NCBI GenBank assembly: GCA_965112735.1
Contig: OZ218952.1
Coordinates: forward strand, 558,001 to 622,000
Length of the DNA stretch: 64,000 nt
Origin: Phaeosaccion multiseriatum
Lineage: Eukaryota > Protista > Ochrophyta, other classes
Direction: 5' to 3'
This document shows positions 43,310 to 60,801 of the stretch, piece after piece. The notes beneath the pieces were generated by a model. It made no database searches. It was not told the origin of the DNA and saw only the letters and a program-made list of their open reading frames with translations. The position numbers and the translations under genes were made by a program. The number at the start of each line of letters is the position of its first letter. Within the stretch, counting starts at the first letter, position 1.

Positions 43310-43470
43310 TCGACCCCTGACGTGCTATTATGCTATCTGCGATAGCATGCTATTGGGCGCCCCGGCGCCCAATAGCATGCTATTTGCACTCGGCGAATAG
43401 CAGATAGCACGCCGGCTGGCGCCGGCGAATAGCAGATAGCACGCCCCGTCGCGCCGGCGATAGCAGACGC
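43310..43470. repeat. Left TIR, perfect 20-bp-stem palindrome (43342-43383) and subterminal ~30-bp repeats
   Basis: atagcatgctattgggcgcc-cc-ggcgcccaatagcatgctat, followed by 2-3 units of atagcagatagcacgccggctggcgccggc. Confidence 0.92.
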
Positions 43471-43639
43471 CCTGCGACAGCCTTTCCACTCCTAGCTGCC
43501 TGCCTAATCAGCATACGTCGAGCGCAGAGAGTATGCGAGCCTTCAGTCTTATATTACCAATACAATGGTGGCTGGGCGAACCTTGGCGTTCCCCTCTCCC
43601 CCCATCTCCCTCTCTCGCGAGGCAGCCATCTCTCCTTCA

Positions 43640-46469
43640 CTAACCCAGGACGCACTTATGCAAGGCCGAGTTGTAAACGTCGGGCAAGGAACCGTTGCGC
43701 ATCCCGGAGCTCAGGTACGCCCGAAAGAGGCGAGTTCTCTCTGCCTCATACTCTTCGCAGGTCAGACACGGCAGCCCACACGCGGCCAAGAAGCGGTCCA
43801 CGGTCTCCTTCTTTGCCCCCGCCGCACTAGACAAAATCGCTACACCGTCGTCCCTTTCCCAGCTGTTGTCTTGCTCAACACCATAGAGCACTTTGCGCAT
43901 GGGGCTGGTGTCTGCCACAGCCAATTTCGACATGAATAGAGCTGTTGCCGGACCGCAAGAATTCGAGCCGGCCTTCTGCTGTGGCACACCAACAAAGACC
44001 TGCCGGAATCGGAGGGCTGCCGTCCCAGGGGCTCTTTCGTCCTCCATGACCTTCTCCACATACACCTGCGTCGCTTGGAGCACTCGCTTCGAAGGGTGGT
44101 GACCGAGGCGCCCATTTCGGACCGTATCAAAGTGCAGAATGTACGCCATAGCACCCTCCCCGTCGTCACTAGCTGCAGAGGTAGGTAGAAGGACAGCGAC
44201 AGTCGAGAAATGGCCGCTGAAACTCGCAGGGAGGAGGAGGAGCTCACACTTCGTCATTGTAAGACCAGACTCCCTGTAACCTTTCGGCAGGAACCCTTTC
44301 GGAGCCGTCGCCAACACGTTGGGCATGGGGGAGTTCTCCACAGCTGGGTTGAAAATGTGACCAAGAGACGCGCACGGGAGTAGTGCCCTGTTTCCGTTCA
44401 CGGATACAGTGGTCATCATCGCGTCCAAAAAGAAGGAGGTGTACTCCCCCTTTTCCTTGTGCATGTCCTGCTCAGCGCCGAGGACAAGCAGCCTCGCCTT
44501 CATGTCCCCTGTCAGCTGCTCAGCGTCGGCCACTGATTGTGCCGCAGGCATGGCCCTGCTTTTCTTCTGGTGGGAAGAAGGGCTGCTGCCCCCCTCCTGC
44601 TCCTCCTCCTCCTCCTCCTCCTGCTCCTCCTCCTCCCCCCCCTCCTGCTCCTCCTCCTCCTCCTCCTCCTCCTCCTCCTCCTCCTCCTCCTCATCATCAT
44701 CATCATCATCATCACCACCACCATCATCCTCCTCCTCCTCCTCCTCCTCCTGCTCCTCCTCCTCCTGCTTCCCCAACGCCGTCTTCAGTAGGAAGTGAGA
44801 GAGTGCAGCTTGCATGCTTTTCTGACCGCTCGATGAGTGGGAGTCTCTGTGGCGCTTAACGCCAGACAAATGAGTCCACTGAGGCTTGTACTTGCCCTTC
44901 CCGGCGCTCTGACAAGCAGGCCTGGTGCACACAACAGATACCAGCATATCCAATGATGTTCTGGCGTGTCTGATGGAGAAGTTCGCTTTGGCCTCAAGCT
45001 GAATCAAAGCTGGCGTATGGATCTTCACGAAGCTTGCTGCATCACCGACCTTGCTTCCGCTGAGAGTTTGCATCTCCACATCAGGCATTTCCCGCAAAAG
45101 ATAAAAGAACTTGGTTCCTTGCGCGTGGAGCCAGCTCTTCGCCTTCTTCGTCAGTGCCCCCTCTTGCCCCGCCTTCCCGCCTTTCGTCCCGCCGGCACTC
45201 TCTCCCTCACTATCACTGGTGGTCTCACTGACACGGGCAGCACCACCTCGATGACCTGCCTTCTTGGGTGGGGTATGGGTCGAAAAATCTGTGGCGCTGT
45301 CCAGAGATTGGGTAGGGAAAGACAGGCAAATTTGCACGTTCTCCTGCTGTCTCGCCCCTGATTTCGGGCGTAGCTCGCAGTACAGATCCAGTCTCCACCG
45401 TTTGTCGGGATCGATACGGCCCGGAGGGAAAGTGTAGAACGAGCGCACCTGTATTGGGTGTGTGTTGGAGAAAGAGACAGAGAGGGGCGGGGGGGGGGGC
45501 GGGTTTAAGAAAGGGTTGCTGCCGTAGCAGACAATGCACAAACATCGAGAGGCAGTTGTACCCGACACGTACCACGCGGCGCAGGGAGACGTCGTCGCGG
45601 ATTGTATCCAACCCTCTGCCACGTCTGAATGCCGTGGAGGCTCTGATCGTGATGTCGTTCTTCTTTTGTTCCGTCTGAAAGAGCAATTCGCTGGTCAAAT
45701 GTCCACGGAAGGCCTTGAAGCTGGAGAATCGCTTGTCTTCATTAGCCAGCTGGAACGTGTAGGGCAAGGTCTCGAAGAGCTCGGTCGTGTTGCAGGACAC
45801 CGATGTGCCGAGACTGAAATCAGCCTCGACGGGGTTGAGGCATCCTCTTGGAAATGTCCCCACATGCGCGAACATGAGAGGGGTAGGTTTTGCCTGTCCC
45901 ATCCCTGCACTCAGGGGCAAGGCATAATCGAAGTCTTGTGCCTCAGAAGACGATGCCAAGGTTGCCGTACTCTGGAGATAGGTGTCCTCAAGCCGCCCCC
46001 CCTCCTCCCACCCCAGCTCGTGAGAAGCGTGTTGTGAATGGCTGCTTCGGCGTACTCCCCTGTCGCTGGGACTTTGGTTCCGACGCATTTCCCTCGCGCC
46101 TGCTGGGAATCCTCTTTCGCTGGGACTGCGGCCCCGTCTCCCTTTGCTTCGACCCTTTTCTCCTTCCCTCCTCCCTCCTCCTCCTCCGGATCTGGGTCGG
46201 CTCCGACTCCTGCTGGTACTTCTCCCTGCCCTCCTCCTCTCGGTGTCCTTCCCCCTACTCCGACTCCTGCTGGCATTTCTCCCTCGCTTCCTCCTCTCAC
46301 TGTGCTTCTCCCTGCTCCAACTCCTGCTGGCACTCCTCCCTCTCCTCGCCCTCTCAGGGGCCTTCTCCCGGCTCCGACTCCTGCTGCCAACTGGACTTGG
46401 CGTGCCTCTCCTGCTGTTGTAGTAGTCGCCCCCCCCCCCCCAACTCCTCCCTCCATCGCGGCCAGACAT
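43640..46469 (-). CDS. Transposon-encoded Ulp1/SENP (C48) SUMO-protease-like protein, ~901 aa, with RS-rich N-terminus and a possible C2H2-like Zn site
   Basis: join(46469-45573, 45448-43640), phase-0 GT-AG intron. Catalytic motifs SGHFSTVAV (His), ILHFDT (Asp), VPQQKAGSNSCG (Gln/Cys). RSRSRSR repeats in exon 1. CTRPAC..KRHRDSH. Confidence 0.85.
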
Positions 46470-46565
46470 GAAGGACTTTTGAACCAGTGGGGCCCAGCCA
46501 TGGGCCCAGCCAGCTATAAGCCAATAAAGATTCTGCCGTTTCACATTTGGCCACAAACAAAGGCG
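46470..46565. promoter_or_regulatory. Candidate compact bidirectional promoter between the two transposon genes
   Basis: 96 bp between the divergent ATGs (46469 on -, 46566 on +). Contains two gggcccagcca copies, TATAA and CCAAT. Confidence 0.45.
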
Positions 46566-49500
46566 ATGGGCGCCGCGGGCTCGTCCGCGACAGAAGAAGA
46601 CCATGGGCGGGTGGCTGTGACGGAAGACGCGGACAGCGGGCGTGTAGAGCTTACCCGGGACGTAAACGATGTCGACATTGTTCCCTTTGCGATCCAATTC
46701 CATCTTGATCGAGGGCACTTTACTCGGAGTCACTTCATGTATCAAACGGTGCATCGTTGGGTCATGAACAGCGGCCTTTGGTCCAGGCGTCAGACTGTGG
46801 CCGCGAGCAAGCAGCTCAATGGCTACGAGACGCTGCGACAGTTTAATGAGACCCAGCAGAACGTATTTGGTTCAGCATGCTCCATGCTCTCCTATGGGGC
46901 ACCCCGCAGAAAGAAGGTTCGTGGCCCCAACGTCTCCAGGGACCAGGCCATGAAGGACTACTTCCGCAGGGCGAACACAGGCGGCTTTCATCCGAGAGCA
47001 CTCATTAGGCGCAGGCCTGGCCTAATCAAGAGGTACGGTCTGCAAGTCGAAGACATTATCAACGTCGTCAATGTCTTCGCCCGCTTCTGTGCCGACCAAG
47101 CCTACACTCTTGGCGACAAAGGCAACGAGAAGATTGTGGTTCCCGTGACTGTCAAAATGGATGGCTTCGTCATTGCCAAGGGCCATCATACTGATACAAC
47201 CAGCCAAACCAATTGGGGCAATGCACATCAGTTTGGAAATACAACACTGGAGCAGGCGAAGGCAATACTGGAAAAGTCTGATGCTCAGGTGCGTGGCGTC
47301 CCCTCCTTCCCACTGATCTTTCGGGGCAGAATCACTGTTGATCCATCGTCAATCTTAATCACGCCTCCTCGCTCGCTCGCTCACGCTGCAGCCCCGCCTT
47401 TGCTTCGCCTCCTGTCAACCCTCCCTTATCGCTACTCGTTCTGTTCCAGCTGCGAGACGAGGACGCACCTAAGCTGGGTTCCGAGATGATGGAAGTTATG
47501 ATGATGGATCTGAAAGGGGCATACACGGGCTCCATCGGTTTTCAGCTTCACACCGCAGGGGGTGACTACAAAAGTGTTGCCGCGAGCGTGACCGAAATCA
47601 TGAAGGCGCTGCGTGTTTGCATCCCTTGTCTCGAGCTTTTCTGGCAGCGGATTCTGACGGGGGAGAACCCCTCGTGGGTGGAGATGGGCGAGGCGTGTGA
47701 TTGCCACCAAGCTTGTCCCACCGGAGGGGAGGGTCCTTGCGGTGAAAGTGAGTGCGTTTGCGCGACTCAGTTCTCCAGCAGAGTCTGCTCGAGGTGCAAG
47801 AGGAAAGGGCTCGTGTGCAAGAGTCTCCGACCATTGTGCATCTCAACAGACTGTAATGGCGCACAGCTTGCCTTCATTCGGAAAATGGCGGCAAGAACCC
47901 TCGGAGAGGACGACCCCCTGGGGTGGTATGAGGCACTGCCTGACGGGGCTCACCTTGTAAAGTGTGTTCGTGCTACGACATTCAATTGGTGGGTCGTCTG
48001 CCAGGGCTGGCTAGTCGGACTGCGAACTCTTCGCGCCAGATTCCACGATCTGGACCCGGCTCGAAGTGAAGCAGTACAAGCCAATGTTGGCCTTGACGCC
48101 ATTGAAAACAAGGATCCTTTCTCAGTGGAGAGCGCAATCGCTGTTACGACGGCGTCTCTGCAGTTGGCTCTACTCTCAGAGGAGGAGCGGGAGAAGCGCC
48201 GTGCTCTCGTGGGGGTGACCGTGTGCCCGGAGCCGTGGGGTTTCTGGCATCAGAACATGGCCTCGCAGACTCAGAAGCCGACTGGTATGGGCTACCATCA
48301 TGGCTCTGGCATGATCTTCAACGCCGATCGTTCAGGCAGGCATCTGCGCATGCTCAAGGCCCATCATGTGCCTTGTACCACAGAGGTTGTTCTGCGAGAC
48401 GACTGCTTCCAGAGTCTTGGGTCTCTCGTCGTGGTTGGCGACTACGTGTACATGTGTGACAGTGGAGCGAATCAGATTTGGGTGGTGCATGTGCTGGCCG
48501 CTCTTCCAGGAAACAGGGGACCCCGCGCGGCGGCGGAGGAGGGCGACGATGATGATGACGACGACCAGCAACCGGACGGGCATGTAGCAGCGCGTGGTCG
48601 GGGGAGACAGACTCAGCAACGGCATTTGAATTTGAAGGCAGTGCCCTTGGTCCGTCGGATCCAGGAGCGTTGCACTTCTGAGGAGAATGTCCTCGAGGAG
48701 AGAGAAGAGGAGGGCATCCGTTGCCCCGTTGCCATTGCGCTTGCCGTGTCCTCTGAGCGCGCGTTCGACCTCTTTGTCACCCAAGAGGAACCTGGCGGGG
48801 GGGGAGCACTACACCGGCTCTCATTTGACGCTGGCAACCTTTTGCACCTGTGAGCGAGAAGCTGTGTGACCTACCCAAGGGACCTGCGGGCCTCACAGCA
48901 CTCTCGCATGACTGCGTTGCCTGCATCGCCGACAGCTCGCTTTTTGTCTGGGAGGGCAATGTGGAACGTGCCGGAGGACCAGAGGGTGGCAGTGGCAATG
49001 ACGGAGATACACTCATGGCTCTGACTGATGACGAGGAAGATGGTACTGTTGAGAAGCCAAGGCGCGCACACCTCACGTGCGTGAAGTCTCACGTGGGGAC
49101 TCAGCCTTGTGGACTCACGTTGGCCCCACCCGGTGCATACGATGATGAAGATATGATCGTCATCCTCATGCTAGATGAAGGTTTGCATGCGCTTGTCAAG
49201 GTTCTCCTTCGTCGTGACAGTGGGGTGCTAAGCTGGAAGGGATCATCCGTGCTGATGGGCGGACAGGGAAACACAGAACCCGGAGAGAGCACTGCCAGCG
49301 GTACGGCATCGAAAGTACCTTTGTTCAGACCTACGTTCGGCTGCTTCGTGTACAACGCTTTCTTCTTGTCCGACACTGGAAACCAGTGCATTCGAATGAT
49401 CTCGGACTGCTACGTCTACGCCCAGCACCTCATCCCACTACAACGGATGTTGAGTGAGGCGTATCAGCTCCAGGGCGAAGACTTGGATGAGAATGGCAAA

Positions 49501-51319
49501 GACATGCAAAACAACGCACGCACGATGGAGGAGAGCATTGCCAAGCTTCATGTGGTCGACTTGGCTCTCAGTCACATGGGGAAAGCGATATCAGCTGCCA
49601 CAGGCAAATCCCTGGTCTCTCTCCAGGGCCCTGAAGGAATGCCATCACGCGAAGTTCGAGGTGCTATCAAGGCGAGCCTGCAGGCACTACCTCGGATGCT
49701 ACATCGGATGCTTGCAGAGGTGAGAAGGGGGTGCTCCCCATGGCTGTGTGCGTGTGTGTGCGTGAGTGCGTGAGTAAAAATGTCCGTGTCCGTGGGCGCG
49801 TGCGTTTGGAAATCAGCCTTGCCCTTTCGTCTCACGGCTTCGCTGTTCGCTCCTTGCTTGATGCTTCCTCGCTCATTTCCGTCAGCAGGGAGTGCCTCGC
49901 GGCATCGTGGAGAAGATGCAGATGAGGAGCGTTTTGACCCTCAATGTTGAGACTTTCTTCACGAAGCAAAGGGAAGGCCGCCAGGATGTTCCAGACGCTC
50001 TTGAGTATGCCCGAAGAAGGGGCCTTGTGATGCTTGAGGCTGCGAAGAAGGCCAACCCCAGCATGGGCTTTGCCTACTGCACAAGCAGCGTCAACAGCAG
50101 CGGTCGAAAGCTCAGGGCGGGATACCAGCTGGAGCAAAACGAGAGCAGATTGGTGGCTTCACCCGTGTTGAAGCGACCAAGGGTAGCGGAGAAGCTTGAC
50201 GAAGGGCAACGGAAGCAGCGCAAGAAGGACACGCAGGCGCTTCGCAATGCGGCGGCTCGTCTTAGGAAGGTTCCGCAGCAGCGTGTAACCAACAAGAGGA
50301 AGTACAATGTTGGAGCGGCCCCGCGTTCGGTGGCGTTTGCTCCCAACTCTGCGCAAAGCAACGACCCGAGTGGATACCTGTCGCGCTTGCATGAGAGCTC
50401 GGGAGCGAGGAAGCGCGGACAGAAAGGACGGAAGACCGGTGAATCCGTCCGAACTCGCATTCTCTACAGGGCAAATGACGTTGTGATAGTCAGGGCAGAC
50501 AAGGGGTCGGAGGAGAGCTTTTTTCGTGCACAGCTTCGCGTCGATCTTCGGAAGGAGGTGATCGTCTCGAAGAAGGGACGAGGCTCCAAGCAGAAGGTGG
50601 TTCCGGCAAAGCCTGGTGTTTCATACTTTCACGTCGCTGAACAGGACTCTACCGACGAGTCCCAGGACGGGGATGGGGCTGCAGCAGTCGTCTACGAAGT
50701 CGACGGCGGGAAAGAGGCTTCTGTGTCTTGTGCTGCCATTTATGGCGCATTGCCCCGCTACCACGAAGCAATGTACATCGAAGGCTCACATGCAGCTTCA
50801 GGAGGGGTGTGCGCGCAGAGAAGGCTTCGGAGGTTTGCCATCACGGAGGAGCAGCACGAGGAGTGCAAGCAGATTGTCAACAGAGAGGCGGAGGGCCAAG
50901 AGGTGGCCAAGGCGATGGGATACGCCCCCCCCGACCCAAGCGTGCACATGGGAGAGGACATGTCTGAGGACGATAGCAGTGATGGCGAGCAGGAGGCGCT
51001 GAACCTGAGAACACTGCGCAAGAACATCATCGGAAAGGTGGTGGGGGCGATGTCCTCACGTGGGCGCACGGTAAACAAGCCCGAGAGTTATGGGGCTTTG
51101 TCTCGTGGCACGGCAAAAGCAGCAGACTCTAGCTCCAGCGAAGCCACTGCATGTCTAGTCTGTCAGAAAGATGTTGACCACGACAAAATGTTGCTATGTG
51201 ACGGCTGCGATGAGGAGTTTCACACGTACTGCCTGACCCCTCCCCTCTCTACGCTTCCTGAAGGGGACTGGTATTGTGATGGAGTGAATGCTGCCTGCTC
51301 TAGTGGTAAAAGTGACTGA
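46566..51319 (+). CDS. Putative DDE transposase (~1,450-1,475 aa) with Cys-rich insert, internal NHL beta-propeller and C-terminal PHD finger; one frame break near 48840
   Basis: Exons 46566-47288, 47450-49719, 49889-51319. Candidate catalytic motifs: VKMDG (D 47160), STDCNG (D 47849), PDGAHLVKCVR (DxxH, 47942), NVETFFTKQR (E 49949). NHL-like blades: KPTGM..IFNAD, VYMCDSGANQIWV, RPTFGC..FLSDTGNQCIRMI. PHD: CLVC..MLLCDGCDEEFHTYCLTPPL..PEGDWYC. Confidence 0.8.
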
Positions 51320-51569
51320 TTGGCGAGCACAATGTCGATCGGGCCGTCCGCCGGCTGAGCTAGCGGAGAGCCAGTCAATCACAGGGCGGAGAGGTAGGGG
51401 TGCACGGGCAGCAGGTCAGCCAGGCCAGGCAGAGGGTGGACCTTGATATACTCCCTTAGGCATACTATACAAGAACTGACGCGAATTAATGGCAATGAAA
51501 CACGTGTGAGTTGCTTCCTCCGCTCCTAGCCCCCCGCACGCGCACCCTCCCACCCCCGACCCCGGGGGG

Positions 51570-51698
51570 GCGAATAGCACAAAACGCCGGCTGGCGCCGG
51601 CGATAGCACATAGCACGCCGGCTGGCGCCGGCAATAGCAGATAGCACGCCGGCTGGCGCCGGCGATAGCAGATAGCATAATAGCACGTCAGGGGTCGA
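51570..51698. repeat. Right subterminal ~30-bp repeats (about 3 units) plus right TIR
   Basis: Units of atagca(c/g)atagcacgccggctggcgccggc run into the TIR at 51668-51698. Confidence 0.92.
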
Positions 51699-51798: not shown

Positions 51799-53497
51799 AT
51801 GGCTGATGCGGGGGGCGATGATGAACTCTTCAAAACCCAGCTGGCCTTGTACAAAGAGACAGCGCCCTTCGGTCTTACAATTGGCGGTGAGGCCATCCGT
51901 CTACTGATGAAGCAAAGCGACTTCACTGGGGAGACTACGGCGGGCTACGAGTACAAGGCCAACTGGCTGGGAAAGGGGCTGGGAAAGGAGCTCCAGCCGT
52001 TCAATGTCTTGGTGGCGTATGTGGAGATTCTCCCTTCTACCAAAGAGCATCCCATCAAGGTACCCTTCAAGTGGGCAAAATTCAACGACGGTGTGGCTCC
52101 AGACCTCAGTGCTTTTCAGTACTACTTGGTCACACAGCTGGATCAGTGGACCAATGTCTATGCGCGAAGGACTGGGCTGCTGGCGATCCTTTCATGGATG
52201 GACAAGCCCTCGGCGAAGATGGAATTTCCCAAGGATGGTATGTTTCGGCCCAAGAATCCGACTACCGACGGGGACTGGGGAGCGAAACTACTCATCCCCG
52301 ATGATCATCCAGACTTTGTGGAAGAGGAAGAGAACACGGACGAGACGTTTTGGGATCAAGCGCATCCCGAAATTTGCGACAAGCTGCTGCCACAGGGGTG
52401 GCTTCTGAGGGAAGACATCATATCAAGCGAAGAACCTTTTGATGTGAGCGGGATTTCTCGTGACGACGTCATCGGCGAGCTGGCAGACCGACTCGCTCTG
52501 GCGAGTGGACAGGGCACGGGTGTCGACGGTTCTCCGATTGAGCTTCTTCGCGTCTTTTTTCAGGCTTCTTTACCACACCCGCCCACCAAATATGGCCGTA
52601 TTACTGCCGACCCGCATAAGGACTTTGGCCTTGTCGTCAAGGGGAATACTTTCCACTTCTTCGACCCCTGGAAAGGCTGGTAAGTGTAGCCCTGGCGCCC
52701 GCCCTGCAACCTCCCATCTGTCTACTTTGTCTTGAGAAATAGGGCCATCGCTCATCAGCCACCTTTTCGCCTGTAAGGAGCCGCCCTTTTGCCAGACTGA
52801 CACCTATCCACGGGTTAACCATGGGGGTAGGTGTGAGTCTGGCAAGAGGGCGGCTTCTCGTAACCGTGGTTGCGAGCCCCCTCTCGGTGTCGCCCTCGTC
52901 CTTCTGCGTCTTTCTTGCTTGCACAACGATGGGAGTGGAATGTTCTTACGCCCCTGCTGCTGTATCACCACTGCTGCCGCCGCCGCTGCTGCTGCTGCTG
53001 CTGCCTGTGTTGTTGCTTTGTCATAGGGCCACGTTCAGTTCGAGAGTCAGCTCCCTACGTTCGCAGCTCAAAACGTGTTTGGTGGACGTGGCCATCGCAC
53101 TGCAAAGCGTGCAATCTGGGAGAGGTCACAACGGCGCCACCTTTTCTTTCAGCGAGTGGAAGGTGCGGGTGTACGCAGGTGAGATGAGAGAGGGGCTGAT
53201 CGGTATGCTCTGCGGCTCTTTTATCTCTCTCCCTCTCTCTCCCTCTCTCCCTCTCTCTCTATCTCCCTCTTTGCGTATCGGGGGGCGTGGAGGGGCGGGC
53301 TTGGAACCGTAGCTGCCAGCAGCCAACTTGAAACAGACTCAGTTAATTTTTTTCTCACATTCTCGGCCTTTTTGTAAACTTGGTTGACAAGCTTCCCCTG
53401 ACCCATAGCGATGCCTTCGTTTGCTCCCCTCCTCTCTCTCTACGATCTCTGCTATCTATCTATGTCTCCTCTCTCTCCCTCTCTCCTCCCTCCCTCT

Positions 53498-53530
<33 letters not shown>

Positions 53531-56500
53531 GTCGTCTCGTCGCCCCCCCACCGGCCACCAGGCACACCCATCAGCTTGTTCGGGCATGTGACCAGCATCG
53601 AGCAGATTCAGGCCGCAATCAATCGCTACGGGCACTGTCTGGAGGAGAAGAAAGGAGGTCCCCGTGAGGCCATGCTTGACATCCTGGCTCCCAGGGCCTA
53701 TGCTTATTTGGAGGACGATATGAAGCTCGCTCTATCTATGGCCCTTGGGGACATCAAAGCACAGAACGACAAGGGGCTTAGAGCGAGAGAAGTGACCTTG
53801 CTCCTTTTTTATCACGAGCAGACGGGCATCAACAAGCTAGCACTTGAAATTTGGCAAGACGAAGAAGCGGGTGCCCATAAGAAAAAGGGAATAGAAAGGA
53901 AGGTGGTGACGAGGGTGTGGGATGCCCTCAGAGGCACGCTGCTACTGTGGGGGGAGTTGTTGAACGAGGGGTGTGACGTGCAAAAGACGAAGCTTAGGGG
54001 GTATGCTCTAACGTATGGGACTCCGAATAAGCTTGGCGCAAAATCCGTCTTCGACGAGATAATTGCCTCATTGCCCCCCGTGCCCGGCCGGGGGCGGAGC
54101 GAGGCCACGGGCAGAAGGGGGGCATTGCAACCGGCACAGCTGCAGCCGTTGAGTTTACAGGCACAGCCCGATGTTTCCGCGAATGTGTCTCGCGCTCTTC
54201 CATTCACATCTTTCATGCAAGTGCGGAGTTCCGTGGGGGGGGTGCCGCTGACCATGAGGAAGCCGCTGAGGCGGCAGGCGACGAGGAGGCGGCTTCTGCT
54301 TCCGGCTCCGCAAATGGAGGCGCTTCGCAGCAGCAGCTTGACTCGGAGGCCGAAGAGACCACGTCGAAGGAGCCTACTGCGGCCGCCGACGACGAGCCCC
54401 CCCCCCTCACCGCCACGGAGCTGCACATCCTCAAATCCATCTACGCCAATGCCCACGTAGCCCCTCCCATCCGGAAGGAGGCAATGGAGTTCGGTGTCAG
54501 CATGAAGGCTGCCAACGCCATGGAAGCCAAGGGCATTCGCACGGCAAGCAAGCTCAGCGATGACGACGTCAAGGCCTTGTCTGAGGTGCGTTGCTGAGTG
54601 AGTGAGGGAGGGAGGGGGGGGAAGAGAGGGAGGGGGGGAGGGGGTGAGTGAGGAAGGAAGGGGGGGAGGGAGGTAAGTGATTGAGCGGGGGAGGGGGTGA
54701 GTGAGTGAGGGAGGGGGTGAGTGAGTGAGGGAGGGAGGGGGTGAGGTACGTGATTGAGGGAGTGAGTGAGTGAGTGAGTGAGTGAGGTAGCTTTCTCGTG
54801 TGGAGGGGTTGTGCGGAGGTTTGAGGGGGGGGCGGCTCGGAGTCTTTCGTATATGTGACTTCGATTCTTCTCTGCGGAACTCCTGTGCTCCCTCCCTCAC
54901 TCACTCACTCACTCACGCAGTTACTCACTCGCACCATCAATCAGTCCTCTCTCATTCCTTTCATTCACTCACCCACTCACTCATTCACTCATTTACTCAC
55001 TCATTTTCTCACCCATTTACTCACTCACCTGTATCCACTCATCCAACCACCCACTCACTCATTCACTCACACACACACTCACTCATTTACTCACTCATTC
55101 ACTCACTCACCTGTATACACTTTCACTCACCCACCCACCCACTCACTCTCTCTCTCTCACCTCCTCACTCACTCACTCACCCGCTCAGTCTTTCACTCCC
55201 ACAATCCCTCACTCCCGCACTCATCACTCTGTGCTTCACTTCCCTCACGCATTCACTCACTCCTCACTCACTGTGGTCTCAACCGATAGCCCACCCTCCT
55301 GACTCAGTAGTATCTTCTTCTCTTTCTCGTTCGCTCACCAGGCCCACGGTGGCACGGCGGGCACTCGCGTGATGGCCAACAAAATTCGGTCGATGAAGAG
55401 CAACACCACCCGCAGAGAGGAAGAAGAGTACGCGCGTAAGAGAGGGAGGAGGAGAAGGCGGAGGCGGACAGCTTGGAGGAGATCGCCCGCAAGAAGAAGC
55501 GAGACAAAGATGCGGCGGACTTGGCTCGCAACAACGCGCTCATTGAGGAGGAGCGGGGACGAGTGCGCGAGTCCCTGCAAGCTGTGGACGATGCTCTCGC
55601 GCAAGTGAAAGGCGAAGTCACGGAGGAGGTCGAAGCCGCTAGGCAAGCGACGAAAGCTGCCCTCGAGGATGCCAAAGCTCAGGTGAGTGAGTGAGCAGGT
55701 AGGGTAGTGCTGTGGACGGGGGCGTCAGCCGTCTAACGAGTCTGAGAAGGGAAGGGGAGAGGAAGCGGGTGTAGCATGCATTTTGAGGGAGCTGGCTCTG
55801 GCTTTGCTGCCCATATGTGCTCAGGACCCTTCGATGCGTGTCCCACTGAACGTGTTGGATGGCAACCAGCTGTGTATTCCAAAGACAAAAGCAATGTCTG
55901 GGCCTCAGGGACAGAGTCGGTGTGCCGCGGTATCTCTGACCGGTGCGTGGCTGTGGCTCCTGCGCGCGTGTACTGATTCCCCGGCCCACTCGCTACTCCC
56001 CCCCCCCCCCCCACCCTTGTTCAGGTACAGCCGGAGGCGGATTGGGCAGGCAAAACAGCTACCTCCGAATCCCTAATTGCGGCTGCTCAGGCACAGGGCG
56101 GTGACGTTTTCGGGGGGGTGACAAACCCCAGCAGTCACTCCTACGCCACTGATGAGATGCTCGTGGCGGCTTGCTCTGGTGGGGCCGCCATGTTCGGTGA
56201 GTGGGGCAGGCGGTTGCTGTTGATTCGTTCTGGCTGCCGCCATTTGCTCTCTTGCCCCCTCATGTCTACCTTCATGATACATGACACACATAACGCGCTG
56301 CTTAGCGTATTGCAGCCGGGGAGGGGTGTCATGCTTGTTGTCATCCGTGTTCTTCGCTCTCTCTCTCTCTTCTTTCCTTCTCTGTCCCTTTGTCTCGTCC
56401 CTGCGCTTCCCTTGGCTGTCCTCGTTCACGGCGTGCCTACATGCAACCCGGCATACATATATATATATATATATATATCTGGCCGCTGAAGCGTACCCCC

Positions 56501-59500
56501 CGTATGCTTACTGGTGAGCGCACTCACCACACGCTACTGCGTTGCTCTCCTCTCCCCACGCCTCTGCCTCCGTGGTGCCGCCCTCAAGGCATGAACTACT
56601 TCCCCAACGGCCAGGAGCTATCGCGTGTGCCTCTTGCGCCAGTGCTCAAGGCCCCAGATCATGTCAACCTGTGAGTAAAAGGCCGGTAAAGCCAGTGACC
56701 AGGCATGCCCATATGCCTGTGGTTCTGTTTGCCCATCCGTATGCCTGCTGAAGCATTCCCTCATTGTGACTCTTCCTCGCTTGTGGTTTGGCGGCGACGA
56801 GTCTTGCGTTTCCCCATCCATCTCTTAGAGAGAAGGTGTGAAGGAAAGGGGGGGGAGAGAGAGAGATGGAGAGAGAGGGAGAGGGAGGGAGGGAGAGAGG
56901 GGGGGGGGGGGGGGAGGGAGACAGAGAGAGTCTCACCTATACTCCACACTATTGCTGACGACGATGCTTCCCCCTCTGACTGGCCCCTTCTCTTGACCAA
57001 CACCGCGGGCACACGGACTGCAGGAAGAGCCCCAACATCCCCTTCGAAGCTCGCGTCTTGAAGACCACTTCCCAGGACATCGCCTCCTCGTTCCACAACA
57101 CGACCAAGTCCAGCGGAGTGTCCGCAGCTGAGTCCAGCACCAAGTCCTGGGGAGCAAGCGCCAGTGTCTCCGGTTGGGGTTCGAAAGTTAGTTCTTCGCA
57201 TTCGAGTACCAGCACCAACAGCACGTCGAGAGCTGAACAGCGGCAAGCCGCACGGAAGACCGCGCATGAATCCAAGACTAACACCGCAACGGTGATCGAA
57301 TACATCAGTTGAGTGAGGAGTGTTGCTTGCTTGTGGGGTTTGAAGAAAGTTGAAGGTGTCTCTGGTGTGAACTCGCTCTCTATCCTGAGGGGCAAGAGTG
57401 GTACTCCCCCCCCCACCCTCCCCCTTGTCAGTCAGCGTATATTCCTGACTCGTCCCCTTCTCTCTTTCTCTGTGCCCACCTTCTCTGCAATCCTCCTGCC
57501 GTATCACCAACTGCTCTACTTGCTGTGTGCTTTGAATTTGAAGTCTGCCCTATGAAGTCCTTCCGCATTCCTTTCGACGAGATGCGAGTGACCGATGAAG
57601 CGCTAGAGGCGGCAGCGAAAGTCGATTCGTTAGTCCAGGGATACCACTTTATTGACACCTTTGGGTCGCACTTAAGGTAAGCATGTTGGTTGTACACGAG
57701 CGTACGGTGAAACAAGCAAGTGTAAAGAGTTTGTGTGAGTGTTCTGTGGGTGGTCTGGAGCCTTCACATCCCACCCAAGGGCATTTTAATCTTGCTTCTT
57801 AGACTCTTAGTTGCTCCGGAGCCTCTGTCACGTCAATGTTGTCCACATCCCCAACACGATTTCCGCCCTACCCCTTTCCACCCTGTCGACCCCAACCACC
57901 ACCCCCACCTGCAGCGACGCTACTCAGATGATGGGCGGGGCATTCTTCCACACAACAACGATGACCACCCATAGCGAGGTGAGGGAGAACAAGAGAGAGA
58001 GAGCTCGGAGAGAGAGCAAGAGAGAGAGAGAGGGAGAAGGAGAGAGCCAGAGAAAGAGAAAGAGGGAAGAAAAAGCCTTCGTAGCAAGTATCTGCCCGTC
58101 CCCTGCCTGCATCTGACACGTACTCTCGCCCACTGCCTGGTCAACCAACCGTCCAACCATCCGTCCGTCCCGCCAGGTCGACTCCTCCGAGCTGATGAAG
58201 GCCGCTGCTGAGCAGTCCTCTGCAAGCAAGGCCAAGGCACAGAAAACGGAGGCATCGGTCTCAGGAGGGGGCTGGGGCATTACTGCTTCCGTTTCGGCGA
58301 GCTTTGGCAGTGCTTCTAGCTCTGGGACCAAGAAGATGAACAGCACTGCCGATGCGATCGGGAATGATGAGAGGAATTCAGAAGCCGTGTACACGACCTA
58401 CGTCCGAGTGAGTATTATCTGTCTCTCCCTTCTCTCTCTTGCCCTCTCTTGCTCCTCTCTCTTGCTCTGTCTCTCTCTTGCTCCCTCCCTCTTGCTCTGT
58501 CTCTCTCTCTCTCCCTCTCCTGCTCCCTCCCTTCCTCCCCTCTTGCTCTCTCTCCGTCTCGATCTTTCTCTCTCTCCCTCCCCCCCTGCCTTGCTCTCTC
58601 CCCGCCATAGTCTGCCGTTCTTGTAGAAGGGCGGGTGTGGGTCGTCCGACGTCCTTGCTGGCTTGTTCCCGATTCTCACCGCGCCCATCCTTGCATGCTC
58701 TGCCCCTCTGTCTACACCTCTTGCTTGTTGCCCGCTCTCTGCTCTGGGCGCTCCTTTCAGTCCCTCGGGCCCAACGCACCAACGGCGACGACGTTCGCAC
58801 AGTCTCTCTTCTCCGACAATTCGACTTGGGCTATCATCGACAGAGGCCCGTTGTCTGCGCTCGTGACAATCGACGACATTCTTCGCAAAGGTAGGTGAAG
58901 GGCCTTTTGCGTCCTCGCTCTCTCTCTCCCTACGTGTATGAGAAAGAGAGAGAGAAGCCTAGAGAGAGAGTAGAAACAGAGAGAAGAGAGAGAGAGCAAG
59001 AGAGAGAGAGCGAGGTATCTAGATTCCTGTATCTACATTCCTGTACGATGATACGCTCTTTGTCGACGACCCCCTTCCCCGTCTTTTGTGTTCTCACTCC
59101 TTCCTCCCTTCGTACCGCCCCGGAACCTTGTCCTCTTGAATCTCCCTTTCTTTACCCACAGACCTCCAAGAGCACAACATCCCCGAGCAGTCTATTCGGT
59201 GGATCCAGGCAGCCCGCGAGTCCAGAGCGAGAGCGTGGATGTCCCTGATCCATGAGTTCGATCTCGTGCCCCTCGCCCTGCGAGAGGTGATCAGCAGCAA
59301 CGCACCGCAGCGAAGTAATCAGCACGGCCTACTCAAGCTGGTACTCCAGCTCATCACGCTGGGGCCCCTTGCAACTCCAGATCGGGTCGACGATGTGGCG
59401 GAGAGGTCTCATCTCGCCCACGCGGTGGTGGATGCTCTTACGCAAGCCGCGGAAGCGCAGCAGGAACTTCCTTCTTCCGATGCTGAGGGTCCGGACTTTC

Positions 59501-60801
59501 TTGATGACGTCAGTGCCCGGCTTGCTGACTTGAGTGGCGAGGTGGGGGGCCTTGTGGAGCTGGCCGATGACAAAAATCTCATCGGGCTGATCAGGGGAAT
59601 GCGCACAACATCTGAGGGCTGGAGCCGATTTGAGGCGGATTTGAATCTGCGCGGTCCGACACTCGTCCTCAACGTCCTCGAGCCTCTGGCAATGGAGCTG
59701 CAACTTCAATCGCAGCTTGCCAACCTCCAGCTGTTTTACGACTCTATGGACATGAAGAGCTGGGACGCCAAGTATGCTGCAGGTTGGGAGCAGCTGACGG
59801 AGGACGATTATCTTTCCGGCAAGAAAATGGAGGGTGTGACGTTCAGTGCCACAGGGATTGTAACCCATCTACGCTTCGGGCCCGTCAGCGGATCACCGGC
59901 AGAACGCGCTCCCCGTCTGACAGCAGCGCTGCCCAGGTTCAAAACCGGACACTTCTCTGCTCTCACGAGCTTGGTCTTGAGTCAGCTCGGCATGGGGGGG
60001 ACTCTGGAGGAGAGCGGCATCTTTTCTGTGCTGACGCAACTCACCGAACTGGACCTGAGCTCGAACAAGCTCACGGGGGGCGTACCAAGCCCCAAGAACC
60101 TGCCACGACTCAAGATTCTCAACCTTTCCGAGAACCTGCTCGATCTTGGCATTCACCCTGATGTGTGGAAGCACAAGCTTCTGGAGGACGTGAATCTTAG
60201 CCGAAACCATCTCGGGGGGGAAGTCATGCAGGGCATCAGTATGCCGAGTGTGGTCCGTATCGATCTCAGCTTTAATTTCAGGGGGTGGACGTGGGATGCG
60301 AGCTACACACCTCCAACCTTCGACCAGCTCGAAAATCTCGACGGGGAACCCTATGGGGAGGCCAAGGGGTACCCACGCCATCCAGTAGCTGGTCACTACT
60401 ACAGGAACAACGGCACTTTCAGGGGGAAGTTCTCGGACAACTGGGCTTTGCACCATGACCCCTTCGGCCGATGCGCCCGGCTACTGACCATTGACCTACA
60501 ATACTGCGGCTGGTGCGACTTGTTCGTGACGCGAAACTTTCATACGACTACCGGCAGCAAGATTTCCAAAGGTGTACACAGCGTCGTGGGTCCTCGGCGG
60601 TACCACCTCAAAGGCGTGCAGGACTACAAGATAAGAAGGATGCAGGGGACGCAAAAGACGCCTGCTAGGCACGTGTTGGTGAGGACAGATCTCGATTGGA
60701 GACTTGGTCCAGACAGCCCGGGCGAAGAGCATCTGAGCGTTGCAGGTACAGACGTACCGGATTGGGCAAAGAAGTTGGATCGTTATGGTTCAAGCGCTTA
60801 G
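51799..60801 (+). CDS. MACPF-like (GVIN1/VLIG N-terminus-type) pore-forming domain fused to C-terminal LRRs; 12 exons, ~1,711 aa, two apparent 1-nt frameshifts
   Basis: Exons 51799-52679, 53027-53178, 53562-54585, 55342-55682, 56025-56196, 56589-56670, 57024-57307, 57544-57676, 57915-57978, 58177-58407, 58761-58890, 59162-60801. Total 5134 nt, plus 2 missing nt gives 1712 codons. Motifs: ACSGGAAMFG, FIDTFGSHL..MGGAFF, two Ser/Gly-rich TMH-like segments, NSTWAIIDRG..LVTIDDIL. LRRs: LTQLTELDLSSNKLTG, LPRLKILNLSENLL, LEDVNLSRNHLGG. Confidence 0.78.

Follow-up and report, generated by a model that had tools for sequence, protein, structure and literature searches.

A gene family of Phaeosaccion multiseriatum is predicted, from its gene models, to join a divergent MACPF domain and plant-type leucine-rich repeats (LRRs) in one gene. 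The member described here (hereafter, the window copy) lies on the + strand at positions 51799–60801 of a 64,000-nucleotide (nt) stretch of DNA, the window, which corresponds to positions 558,001–622,000 of the forward strand of contig OZ218952.1 (assembly GCA_965112735.1). Coordinates are those of the window unless a contig, locus or protein is named, and paralogues were sought in the same genome; the labels used for paralogous loci (L004–L020), contigs (C1, C3, C4, C10 and C12) and homologues (P0121–P0214) are those of this analysis. MACPF proteins are pore-forming executioners of animal immunity and, to our knowledge, those of algae are almost unstudied. The family plan comprises a helical N-terminal domain, a SAM-like/helix-hairpin-helix-like segment, a coiled coil, the MACPF domain, a helical region and a variable C-terminal recognition module. 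In the window copy and seven paralogues this last module consists of five plant-type LRRs and a further domain, which is a ricin-B lectin in some members and unrecognised in the window copy.

Exon structure of the MACPF-LRR part

The MACPF-LRR part of the window copy is assembled from seven short exons (56025–58890) and a 1.6-kb last exon (59162–60801), designated E1 to E8. All introns are bounded by GT..AG with consistent phases, and their lengths range from 198 to 392 nt. The spliced sequence of approximately 910 codons is free of stops and frameshifts and retains all of the residues that are invariant in the family. The individual features are as follows.

56025–56196, + strand: E1, start of the MACPF domain with the SGGAAMFG motif
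56589–56670, + strand: E2, MACPF domain; one exon with E1 in distant paralogues
57024–57307, + strand: E3, first Ser/Thr/Gly/Ala-rich segment (equivalent of CH1, transmembrane hairpin TMH1) and the following strand
57544–57676, + strand: E4, a helix and F-G-S-H of the MACPF signature; contiguous with E3 in paralogues
57915–57978, + strand: E5, G-G-x-F part of the signature and central strand; the GG and F are family-invariant
58177–58407, + strand: E6, second Ser/Gly/Ala-rich segment (CH2/TMH2 equivalent), mapping to residues 257–298 of the homologue model described below
58761–58890, + strand: E7, end of the MACPF domain and best-conserved exon of the family (G-P-N ... W..IDRG)
59162–59949, + strand: E8, first part, helical region after the MACPF domain; predicted local distance difference test score (pLDDT) of the model 45–80
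59950–60303, + strand: E8, LRR part, five plant-type leucine-rich repeats
60304–60801, + strand: E8, C-terminal part, 165 residues and the stop codon; no Pfam match; pLDDT <50

An earlier reading of the window (hereafter, the original prediction) had proposed a single-chain immune sensor-executioner at this position. The motif strings that it quoted are all present in the exons of the window copy, and the 58890/59162 junction that it singled out is a canonical GT..AG junction, in phase.

The assembly of E1 to E8 is not a product of chance, since it recurs in three independent settings. The same exons are found in the same order at ten further loci of the genome. In paralogues, E3 and E4 form a single uninterrupted open reading frame (ORF) with exactly one codon at the point where the window copy has a split codon, and E1 and E2 are fused likewise in three distant paralogues. 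The window exons are also collinear with annotated proteins of Ectocarpus and Cladosiphon, on which they map without gaps. On the Ectocarpus protein P0214, for example, E1 extends to residue 243 and is followed by E2 (residues 245–269), E3 (278–367), E4 (369–411), E5 (417–433), E6 (434–510) and E7 (511–551), with one residue between exons at split codons and none at phase-0 junctions.

Identity of the MACPF domain

The domain spanning E1 to E7 is predicted, from profile scores and fold modelling of its relatives, to be a divergent MACPF domain. Against the Pfam family PF01823 (gathering threshold 21.5 bits), the E3+E4 ORF of a paralogue scored 18.9 bits (E 0.0017), and the full-length homologues P0121, P0122, P0127, P0174 and P0214 passed the threshold with 22.6–29.8 bits. 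In a language-model comparison, the neighbours of a paralogue E3+E4 ORF were MACPF and cholesterol-dependent-cytolysin (CDC) clusters, at a score of 0.95 and with 180 features shared. For the MACPF domain of an Ectocarpus homologue, an AlphaFold model built from 26 family members has a mean pLDDT of 71 and agrees with the MACPF fold, which is defined by a bent central four-stranded sheet between two helical clusters (CH1 and CH2). All 50 of the PDB matches listed by Foldseek for this model are MACPF proteins (best E 1.3e-7), and the closest structural matches are bona fide pore-formers. The original prediction had assigned the domain to MACPF and had proposed structure prediction as a check; both the assignment and the check, which was run on the Ectocarpus homologue domain, came out in its favour, with homologues over the PF01823 cut-off, a paralogue ORF near it and a predicted fold that matches MACPF structures.

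Within this model, E3 corresponds to residues 109–175, which comprise helices and a disordered loop. The fraction of Ser, Thr, Gly and Ala amounts to 0.70–0.73 in E3 and E6, at the CH1 and CH2 positions of the model, and both of these segments are retained at hairpin length in all family members. E7 is 74–86% identical to its paralogous counterparts, and across the family (26 homologues) its G-P, W and D-R residues are invariant or nearly so.

Some sequence-level results speak against the assignment. Pfam searches of ten pieces of the window copy, exon by exon, returned LRR families only and no MACPF match, and a six-frame scan of the whole genome with PF01823 gave no match, the latter because the exons are too short (pieces of 21–94 residues). 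Across E4 and E5 the signature of the window copy reads F-G-S-H-L-x7-G-G, versus the classical (Y/W)-G-(T/S)-H-(F/Y)-x6-G-G; the H and the G-G are invariant in 26 family members, and it is the aromatic positions and the spacing that deviate. PDB sequences searched with profiles of E3+E4 and of the whole domain (26 homologues) gave chance matches only (TFIID, Hsp70).

The last exon and its leucine-rich repeats

E8 comprises 545 codons; a helical region comes first, then the five plant-type LRRs and finally a tail of 165 residues without a recognised domain. About five repeats had been noted here in the original prediction, and five tandem repeats of the LxxLxLxxNxL type, typical of curved LRR solenoids, are found; Pfam places them over its cut-off of 27 bits (LRR_4, 33.7 bits; LRR_8, 28.1 bits). 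AlphaFold predicts this part with a pLDDT of 76–93, and Foldseek matches it to plant LRR ectodomains such as BAK1/SERK (E 3.7e-7). The quality of the E8 model is good for the LRRs only, with the helical part mediocre and residues 389–545 unpredicted. A word search with the whole of E8 returned only generic plant-type LRR proteins, covering no more than 35% of the exon, and a word search with residues 1–235 returned no relatives.

The placement of E8 in the MACPF gene follows from the canonical, in-phase splice at 58890/59162, from an order of exons that is the same at eight loci, from the conservation of the helical start of E8 in seven paralogues, which extends to the 25 codons ahead of the first ATG in the E8 ORF, and from an hhalign comparison in which the start of E8 matches, with E 2.3e-4, the segment that comes after the MACPF domain within individual proteins of brown algae. 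A W..R..W helix after the MACPF domain is visible in the homologues. The fusion of MACPF domain and LRRs put forward in the original prediction is thus sustained by order, splice phase and homology alike. It is very improbable that the LRR exon is a separate gene lying 3' of the MACPF gene, as its own ATG (59239) and long ORF might suggest, because the codons before that ATG are conserved, they are homologous to a segment lying within single proteins of brown algae, the 58890/59162 splice is canonical and in phase, and not only the order but also the spacing is maintained at the eight loci. No description of the family turned up in literature searches on MACPF proteins combined with LRRs in algae or on MACPF proteins of Ectocarpus.

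The gene family and selection on its last exon

The original prediction had called for a search for paralogues, and 11 family loci were found in the genome with the most conserved exon, E7. Eight of the 11 are of the LRR type, namely the window copy on C3, one locus on C12, a cluster of four on C1 and a tandem pair on C10; the other three are without LRRs (two on C4, one on C10). In L004 (1480–3126), L005 (1057–2646) and L007 (1480–3153), situated on C1 and C10, the LRRs are followed by a ricin-B beta-trefoil lectin with three QxW-like repeats (RicinB_lectin_2, 38–45 bits versus a cut-off of 25.6 bits); no ricin-B lectin was found by Pfam in the C-terminus of the window copy. The loci lacking an LRR exon, L009 (5268–7242; C10:348k), L010 (5358–7566; C4:347k) and L011 (5266–7501; C4:359k), have E1+E2 and E3+E4 as single exons and carry R in place of H in the signature (F-G-S-R), and their downstream ORFs match no Pfam family. 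The last exon of L008 (C1:6575567–6579358) is truncated, with an open frame of 322 codons that matches residues 60–319 of E8 only, and this locus is probably a decayed copy.

One paralogue on C1 has an uninterrupted canonical model from ATG to stop, with nine exons and approximately 1,300 residues. This intact paralogue (L013:4259, C1:6588258) begins with M-G-G-V-L-G-G, a possible N-myristoylation site that would fit membrane association of a cytosolic protein. In the paralogue and homologue models, no N-terminal signal peptide can be seen.

Selection was assessed from Nei-Gojobori proportions of nonsynonymous (pN) and synonymous (pS) differences in two recent tandem paralogue pairs, on C1 and C10. 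The results concern these paralogues and not the window copy, whose nearest paralogue is only about 50% identical, so that synonymous sites are saturated. For the C1 pair, pN exceeds pS in E8 (0.102 versus 0.035; one-sided Fisher p 7e-6), whereas in the MACPF exons it is the lower of the two (0.035 versus 0.072); the contrast in nonsynonymous to synonymous differences between E8 and the MACPF exons corresponds to an odds ratio of 6 (p 1.3e-4). The C10 pair follows the same trend without reaching significance (p 0.09). Of the diversifying selection for which the original prediction had proposed to test the LRRs, what stands is an excess of pN over pS in the last exon of one pair; a focus on the repeats themselves does not. 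The excess in the C-terminal exon fits a recognition module engaged in an arms race.

Homologues in other organisms

A profile of eight paralogue E3+E4 ORFs was used to search 1.84 billion representative sequences and returned 93 proteins, the best of them from Ectocarpus species, Cladosiphon and the diatom Pseudo-nitzschia. The closest relatives, from Ectocarpus siliculosus (CBJ28670.1, P0122) and further Ectocarpus spp., Cladosiphon okamuranus and Pseudo-nitzschia multistriata, are 35–58% identical exon by exon and are annotated as "conserved unknown" or "MACPF domain-containing". In common with the window copy they have the SAM-like segment, the coiled coil, the MACPF domain and the W..R..W helix that follows it, but in place of LRRs their C-termini contain domains that are unrecognised or of lectin type (jacalin, ricin B and, by UniRef name, bulb-type lectin), with no match to E8. 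Across the homologues, the position after the MACPF domain is occupied by jacalin, ricin-B, F5/8-C or, again by UniRef name, bulb-type lectin domains. LRRs are absent from all 42 long homologues, in keeping with the original prediction, which knew of no MACPF-LRR fusion in algae, and as far as the databases searched go the combination appears to be specific to this genome.

Coral, rotifer and Pelomyxa have giant GTPases of the URGCP/VLIG type ("interferon-induced very large GTPase 1-like") in which the same MACPF-like module is present near the N-terminus, with profile E-values of 1e-9 to 1e-12 and with E3, E4 and E7 all aligned. These proteins, in which the GTPase follows the MACPF-like module, are 1,300–2,500 residues long. 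An URGCP-like GTPase domain is found in P0155, P0166, P0176, P0183, P0201, P0204 and P0206 (rotifer, Pelomyxa and other organisms), approximately 900 residues downstream of the module, and P0185 combines the module with a GBP-type GTPase. Because the MACPF module occurs in URGCP/VLIG-type proteins, the resemblance to the N-terminus of GVIN1/VLIG that the original prediction had pointed out is correct at the level of homology. No GTPase family was detected by Pfam in the window exons or in E8 of the paralogues. A paper on human GVIN1 does not mention the MACPF part, and literature searches (GVIN with MACPF, very large GTPase with pore-forming) found no description of the shared module or of the family.

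The upstream part of the window copy and its reading frame

Upstream of E1, the following segments could be delineated in the window copy.

51799–52679, + strand: N1, first candidate exon, ATG at 51799, 293 codons; ends in a G/GTAAGT donor, in phase with N1b
53027–53178, + strand: N1b, small linking exon; canonical AG/GT sites, in phase with N1 and N2
53562–54147, + strand: N2, helical N-terminal domain; 3' end uncertain
54222–54585, + strand: acidic linker and SAM-like/helix-hairpin-helix-like segment (PPIRK..G motif), in another frame than N2
55342–55682, + strand: linker and coiled-coil exon, with a frame change near 55441–55446 within a purine-rich expansion

The family character of much of this region is apparent from its relatives. 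N2 shows weak homology to the domain encoded by the first exon of the paralogues (tblastn in the N2 frame, 25% identity, E 0.001), although it has no close paralogue in the genome. The segment at 54222–54585 is 49% identical to exon 1 of a paralogue, and its PPIRK..G motif is found also in Ectocarpus, Cladosiphon, diatom and coral homologues; the term SAM-like denotes a resemblance by eye only. Like the SAM-like segment, the linker and coiled-coil exon is clearly homologous to its counterparts in the paralogues; its coiled-coil part aligns to Cladosiphon P0126 and continues into E1 without a gap. Neither N1, N2 nor the SAM-like segment matches a Pfam family.

N1 has no paralogue in the genome. 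A weak language-model lead (best 0.90, low recognition) links it to papain-like cysteine-protease/deamidase effectors, naming ShET2/EspL2, YopT, Cif and a herpes tegument protease, and N1 contains a single Cys and a later H..D that make up a candidate triad. The lead is too weak for the identity to be used here; a protease domain ahead of a MACPF domain would be of interest, if real. An element at 43310–51698, regarded in the original prediction as an 8.4-kb DNA transposon, ends approximately 100 bp before the ATG at 51799; such an insertion could be relevant to the promoter of the window copy and to its unusual 5' organisation.

The reading frame changes at two sites. The first change falls within 54110–54262, between N2 and the SAM-like segment, where the sole canonical bridge is an atypically short intron of 74 nt (54148–54221; the other introns measure 198–392 nt). 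The second, near 55441–55446, lies in the coiled-coil exon, which is 341 nt long versus the 291-nt single-frame exon of paralogues L013, L014, L016 and L020. A TAA is present at 55437–55439 in the downstream frame, the upstream frame stops near 55605, and no canonical splice site that rescues this frame change was found. Given the exon structure typical of the family and these frame changes, translation begun at 51799 would not reach the MACPF domain. At both sites the DNA contigs of four runs, all of a single sample, show the same sequence as the assembly. "Joints" in the DNA-run contigs were considered as splice evidence and rejected, their positions being low-complexity repeats and not splice sites. 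Both breaks lie in G-rich or purine-rich low-complexity runs. At 55997, in the poly-C run of the intron before E1, one of the four runs has an extra C which, as a length polymorphism or a read error, indicates that homopolymer runs here are unstable or error-prone.

The single chain of approximately 1,800 residues envisaged in the original prediction therefore fails for the window copy, as its frame is broken upstream of the MACPF domain. The upstream elements that had been described do exist, namely the coiled coil, the SAM-like segment and the N-terminal exons, of which N1, N1b and N2 are in phase, but they do not share a single open frame with the MACPF domain. From its sequence, the window copy may be disabled or N-terminally rearranged. 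Possible reasons for the breaks are decay to a young pseudogene, a lesion confined to this strain, an alternative splice, or read errors that recur systematically in G-rich runs.

The first of these is a serious possibility, which we nevertheless place somewhat short of even: the window copy would be a young pseudogene, or a decaying member of a functional family, in which the break prevents translation of the MACPF-LRR part. The coiled-coil exon differs in length from that of four paralogues and has stops in both frames, a second frame change lies upstream of it, the assembly is matched by the contigs of four runs, and no in-frame ATG is present between the break and the MACPF core. On the other side, some 910 codons of E1–E8 are intact, with canonical splice sites and all family-invariant residues retained; both breaks occur in low-complexity sequence that may be subject to systematic read errors or to polymorphism in length, and a single sample underlies all four sequencing runs; and a weak, phase-compatible alternative acceptor is situated just past the break.

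Possible function

For the family as a whole, we put at about even the chance that it is a lineage-expanded group of leaderless, probably cytosolic MACPF proteins acting as recognition-coupled pore-formers in defence or cell death. For the window copy, the chance of such a role is lower. According to this model, the C-terminal module would bind a non-self or danger ligand (a protein or a glycan), binding would then allow the MACPF domain to oligomerise, and the two Ser/Gly-rich hairpins would insert into the membrane of an intracellular invader or of the cell itself. A cell-autonomous role in defence or cell death is the best guess because the gene models, being leaderless, suggest that the proteins are probably cytosolic, and because the relatives in animals are fused to interferon-type GTPases. 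For gating by the LRRs, lysis, cell death or an immune role, indirect support is confined to the excess of pN over pS in the C-terminal exon of one paralogue pair and to the missing signal peptides.

Several points weigh against this interpretation. The cytosolic location rests on leaderless gene models only, and some MACPF proteins form no pores. Positive selection is significant in one of the paralogue pairs only, and the excess of pN is spread over the helical, LRR and lectin parts of the last exon and not focused on the LRRs. The sequencing runs that match the locus are DNA only (contigs of four runs from a single sample), and the two frame changes of the window copy, which would separate its N-terminal exons from the MACPF domain, count on the same side.

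It is unlikely, in our estimate, that the proteins are exported toxins or defensive lectin-like pore-formers directed against grazers, competitors or pathogens, with the LRRs or lectins serving to bind the target and not as an intracellular sensor. Carbohydrate-binding modules at the C-terminus (ricin B, jacalin, F5/8-C and, by name, bulb lectin) typically serve secreted pore-formers for targeting, the LRRs belong to the extracellular type of plants, and an excess of pN over pS would equally fit an external arms race. However, a signal peptide is absent from the N-termini of paralogues and homologues, the module is fused to giant GTPases of cytosolic type in animals and Amoebozoa, and SAM-like and coiled-coil parts at the N-terminus are unusual in secreted toxins.

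Less probable again is a non-lytic MACPF domain that binds or scaffolds membranes in order to signal or tether, as in astrotactin, BRINP or Torso-like, or in whatever role it has in the giant GTPases. Such a function sits poorly with the retention, in all members, of both Ser/Thr/Gly/Ala-rich segments at hairpin length, and with best structural matches that are bona fide pore-formers.

A broader form of the recognition-coupled pore-former model can be put forward tentatively, and we are more inclined to doubt it than to accept it. The leaderless MACPF clade would be an ancient cytosolic membrane-attack module in the cell-autonomous immunity of eukaryotes, combined with LRRs here, with lectins in brown algae and diatoms and with VLIG/GVIN-type GTPases in animals and Amoebozoa, and the eight LRR-type genes, with their tandem clusters and a C-terminal exon under positive selection, would encode single-chain pattern-recognition pore-formers without a nucleoside triphosphatase (NTPase) switch. 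If true, this would be a design of innate immunity so far undescribed. The MACPF and LRR folds are already known; what the literature searched does not describe is a leaderless clade common to stramenopile algae and the giant GTPases, or its subfamily of LRR type.

The significance of the family lies in a leaderless MACPF domain that is combined, gene by gene, with differing recognition modules (LRR, ricin B, jacalin and others). Should its members be recognition-coupled pore-formers, they would provide a simple model, open to testing, for the coupling of recognition to membrane attack with no NTPase switch in between, hint at what the unexplained N-terminal part of VLIG/GVIN-like GTPases does, and open a view on algal defence against viruses, bacteria and intracellular parasites.

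Comparison with known systems

The MACPF/CDC superfamily includes perforin, the complement components C6–C9, perforin-2/MPEG1, pleurotolysin B, Plu-MACPF and the apicomplexan perforin-like proteins. The present family differs from these in having no signal peptide and in its signature, where F stands for Y/W, L/V for F/Y, and one extra residue precedes the G-G. Its sequence has diverged so far that profiles match no PDB chain. With respect to the superfamily, novelty lies in the SAM-like and coiled-coil parts at the N-terminus and in the LRRs as a partner. In comparison to the giant GTPases of the VLIG/GVIN/URGCP type, the window gene has only the MACPF-like module in common and is without a GTPase domain.

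Lectin-linked toxins such as CEL-III and LSL are secreted proteins with aerolysin-type or other pore domains. The paralogues resemble them in joining a beta-trefoil ricin-B lectin to a pore-forming domain, although the window copy is without a detectable lectin.

Sensor-executioner immune proteins are represented by the plant NLR resistosomes, by fungal NLR-like proteins with pore-forming N-termini and by the gasdermin systems. No NB-ARC, NACHT or other NTPase switch was detected by Pfam in the exons of the window gene or of its paralogues. The executioner in the present family is predicted to be a MACPF domain, and the order of the parts is reversed relative to many NLRs only in detail. The likeness resides in the linkage of a repeat-type recognition part to a membrane-damaging module, and the tandem expansion of the genes and the fast evolution of their recognition parts also fit this comparison.

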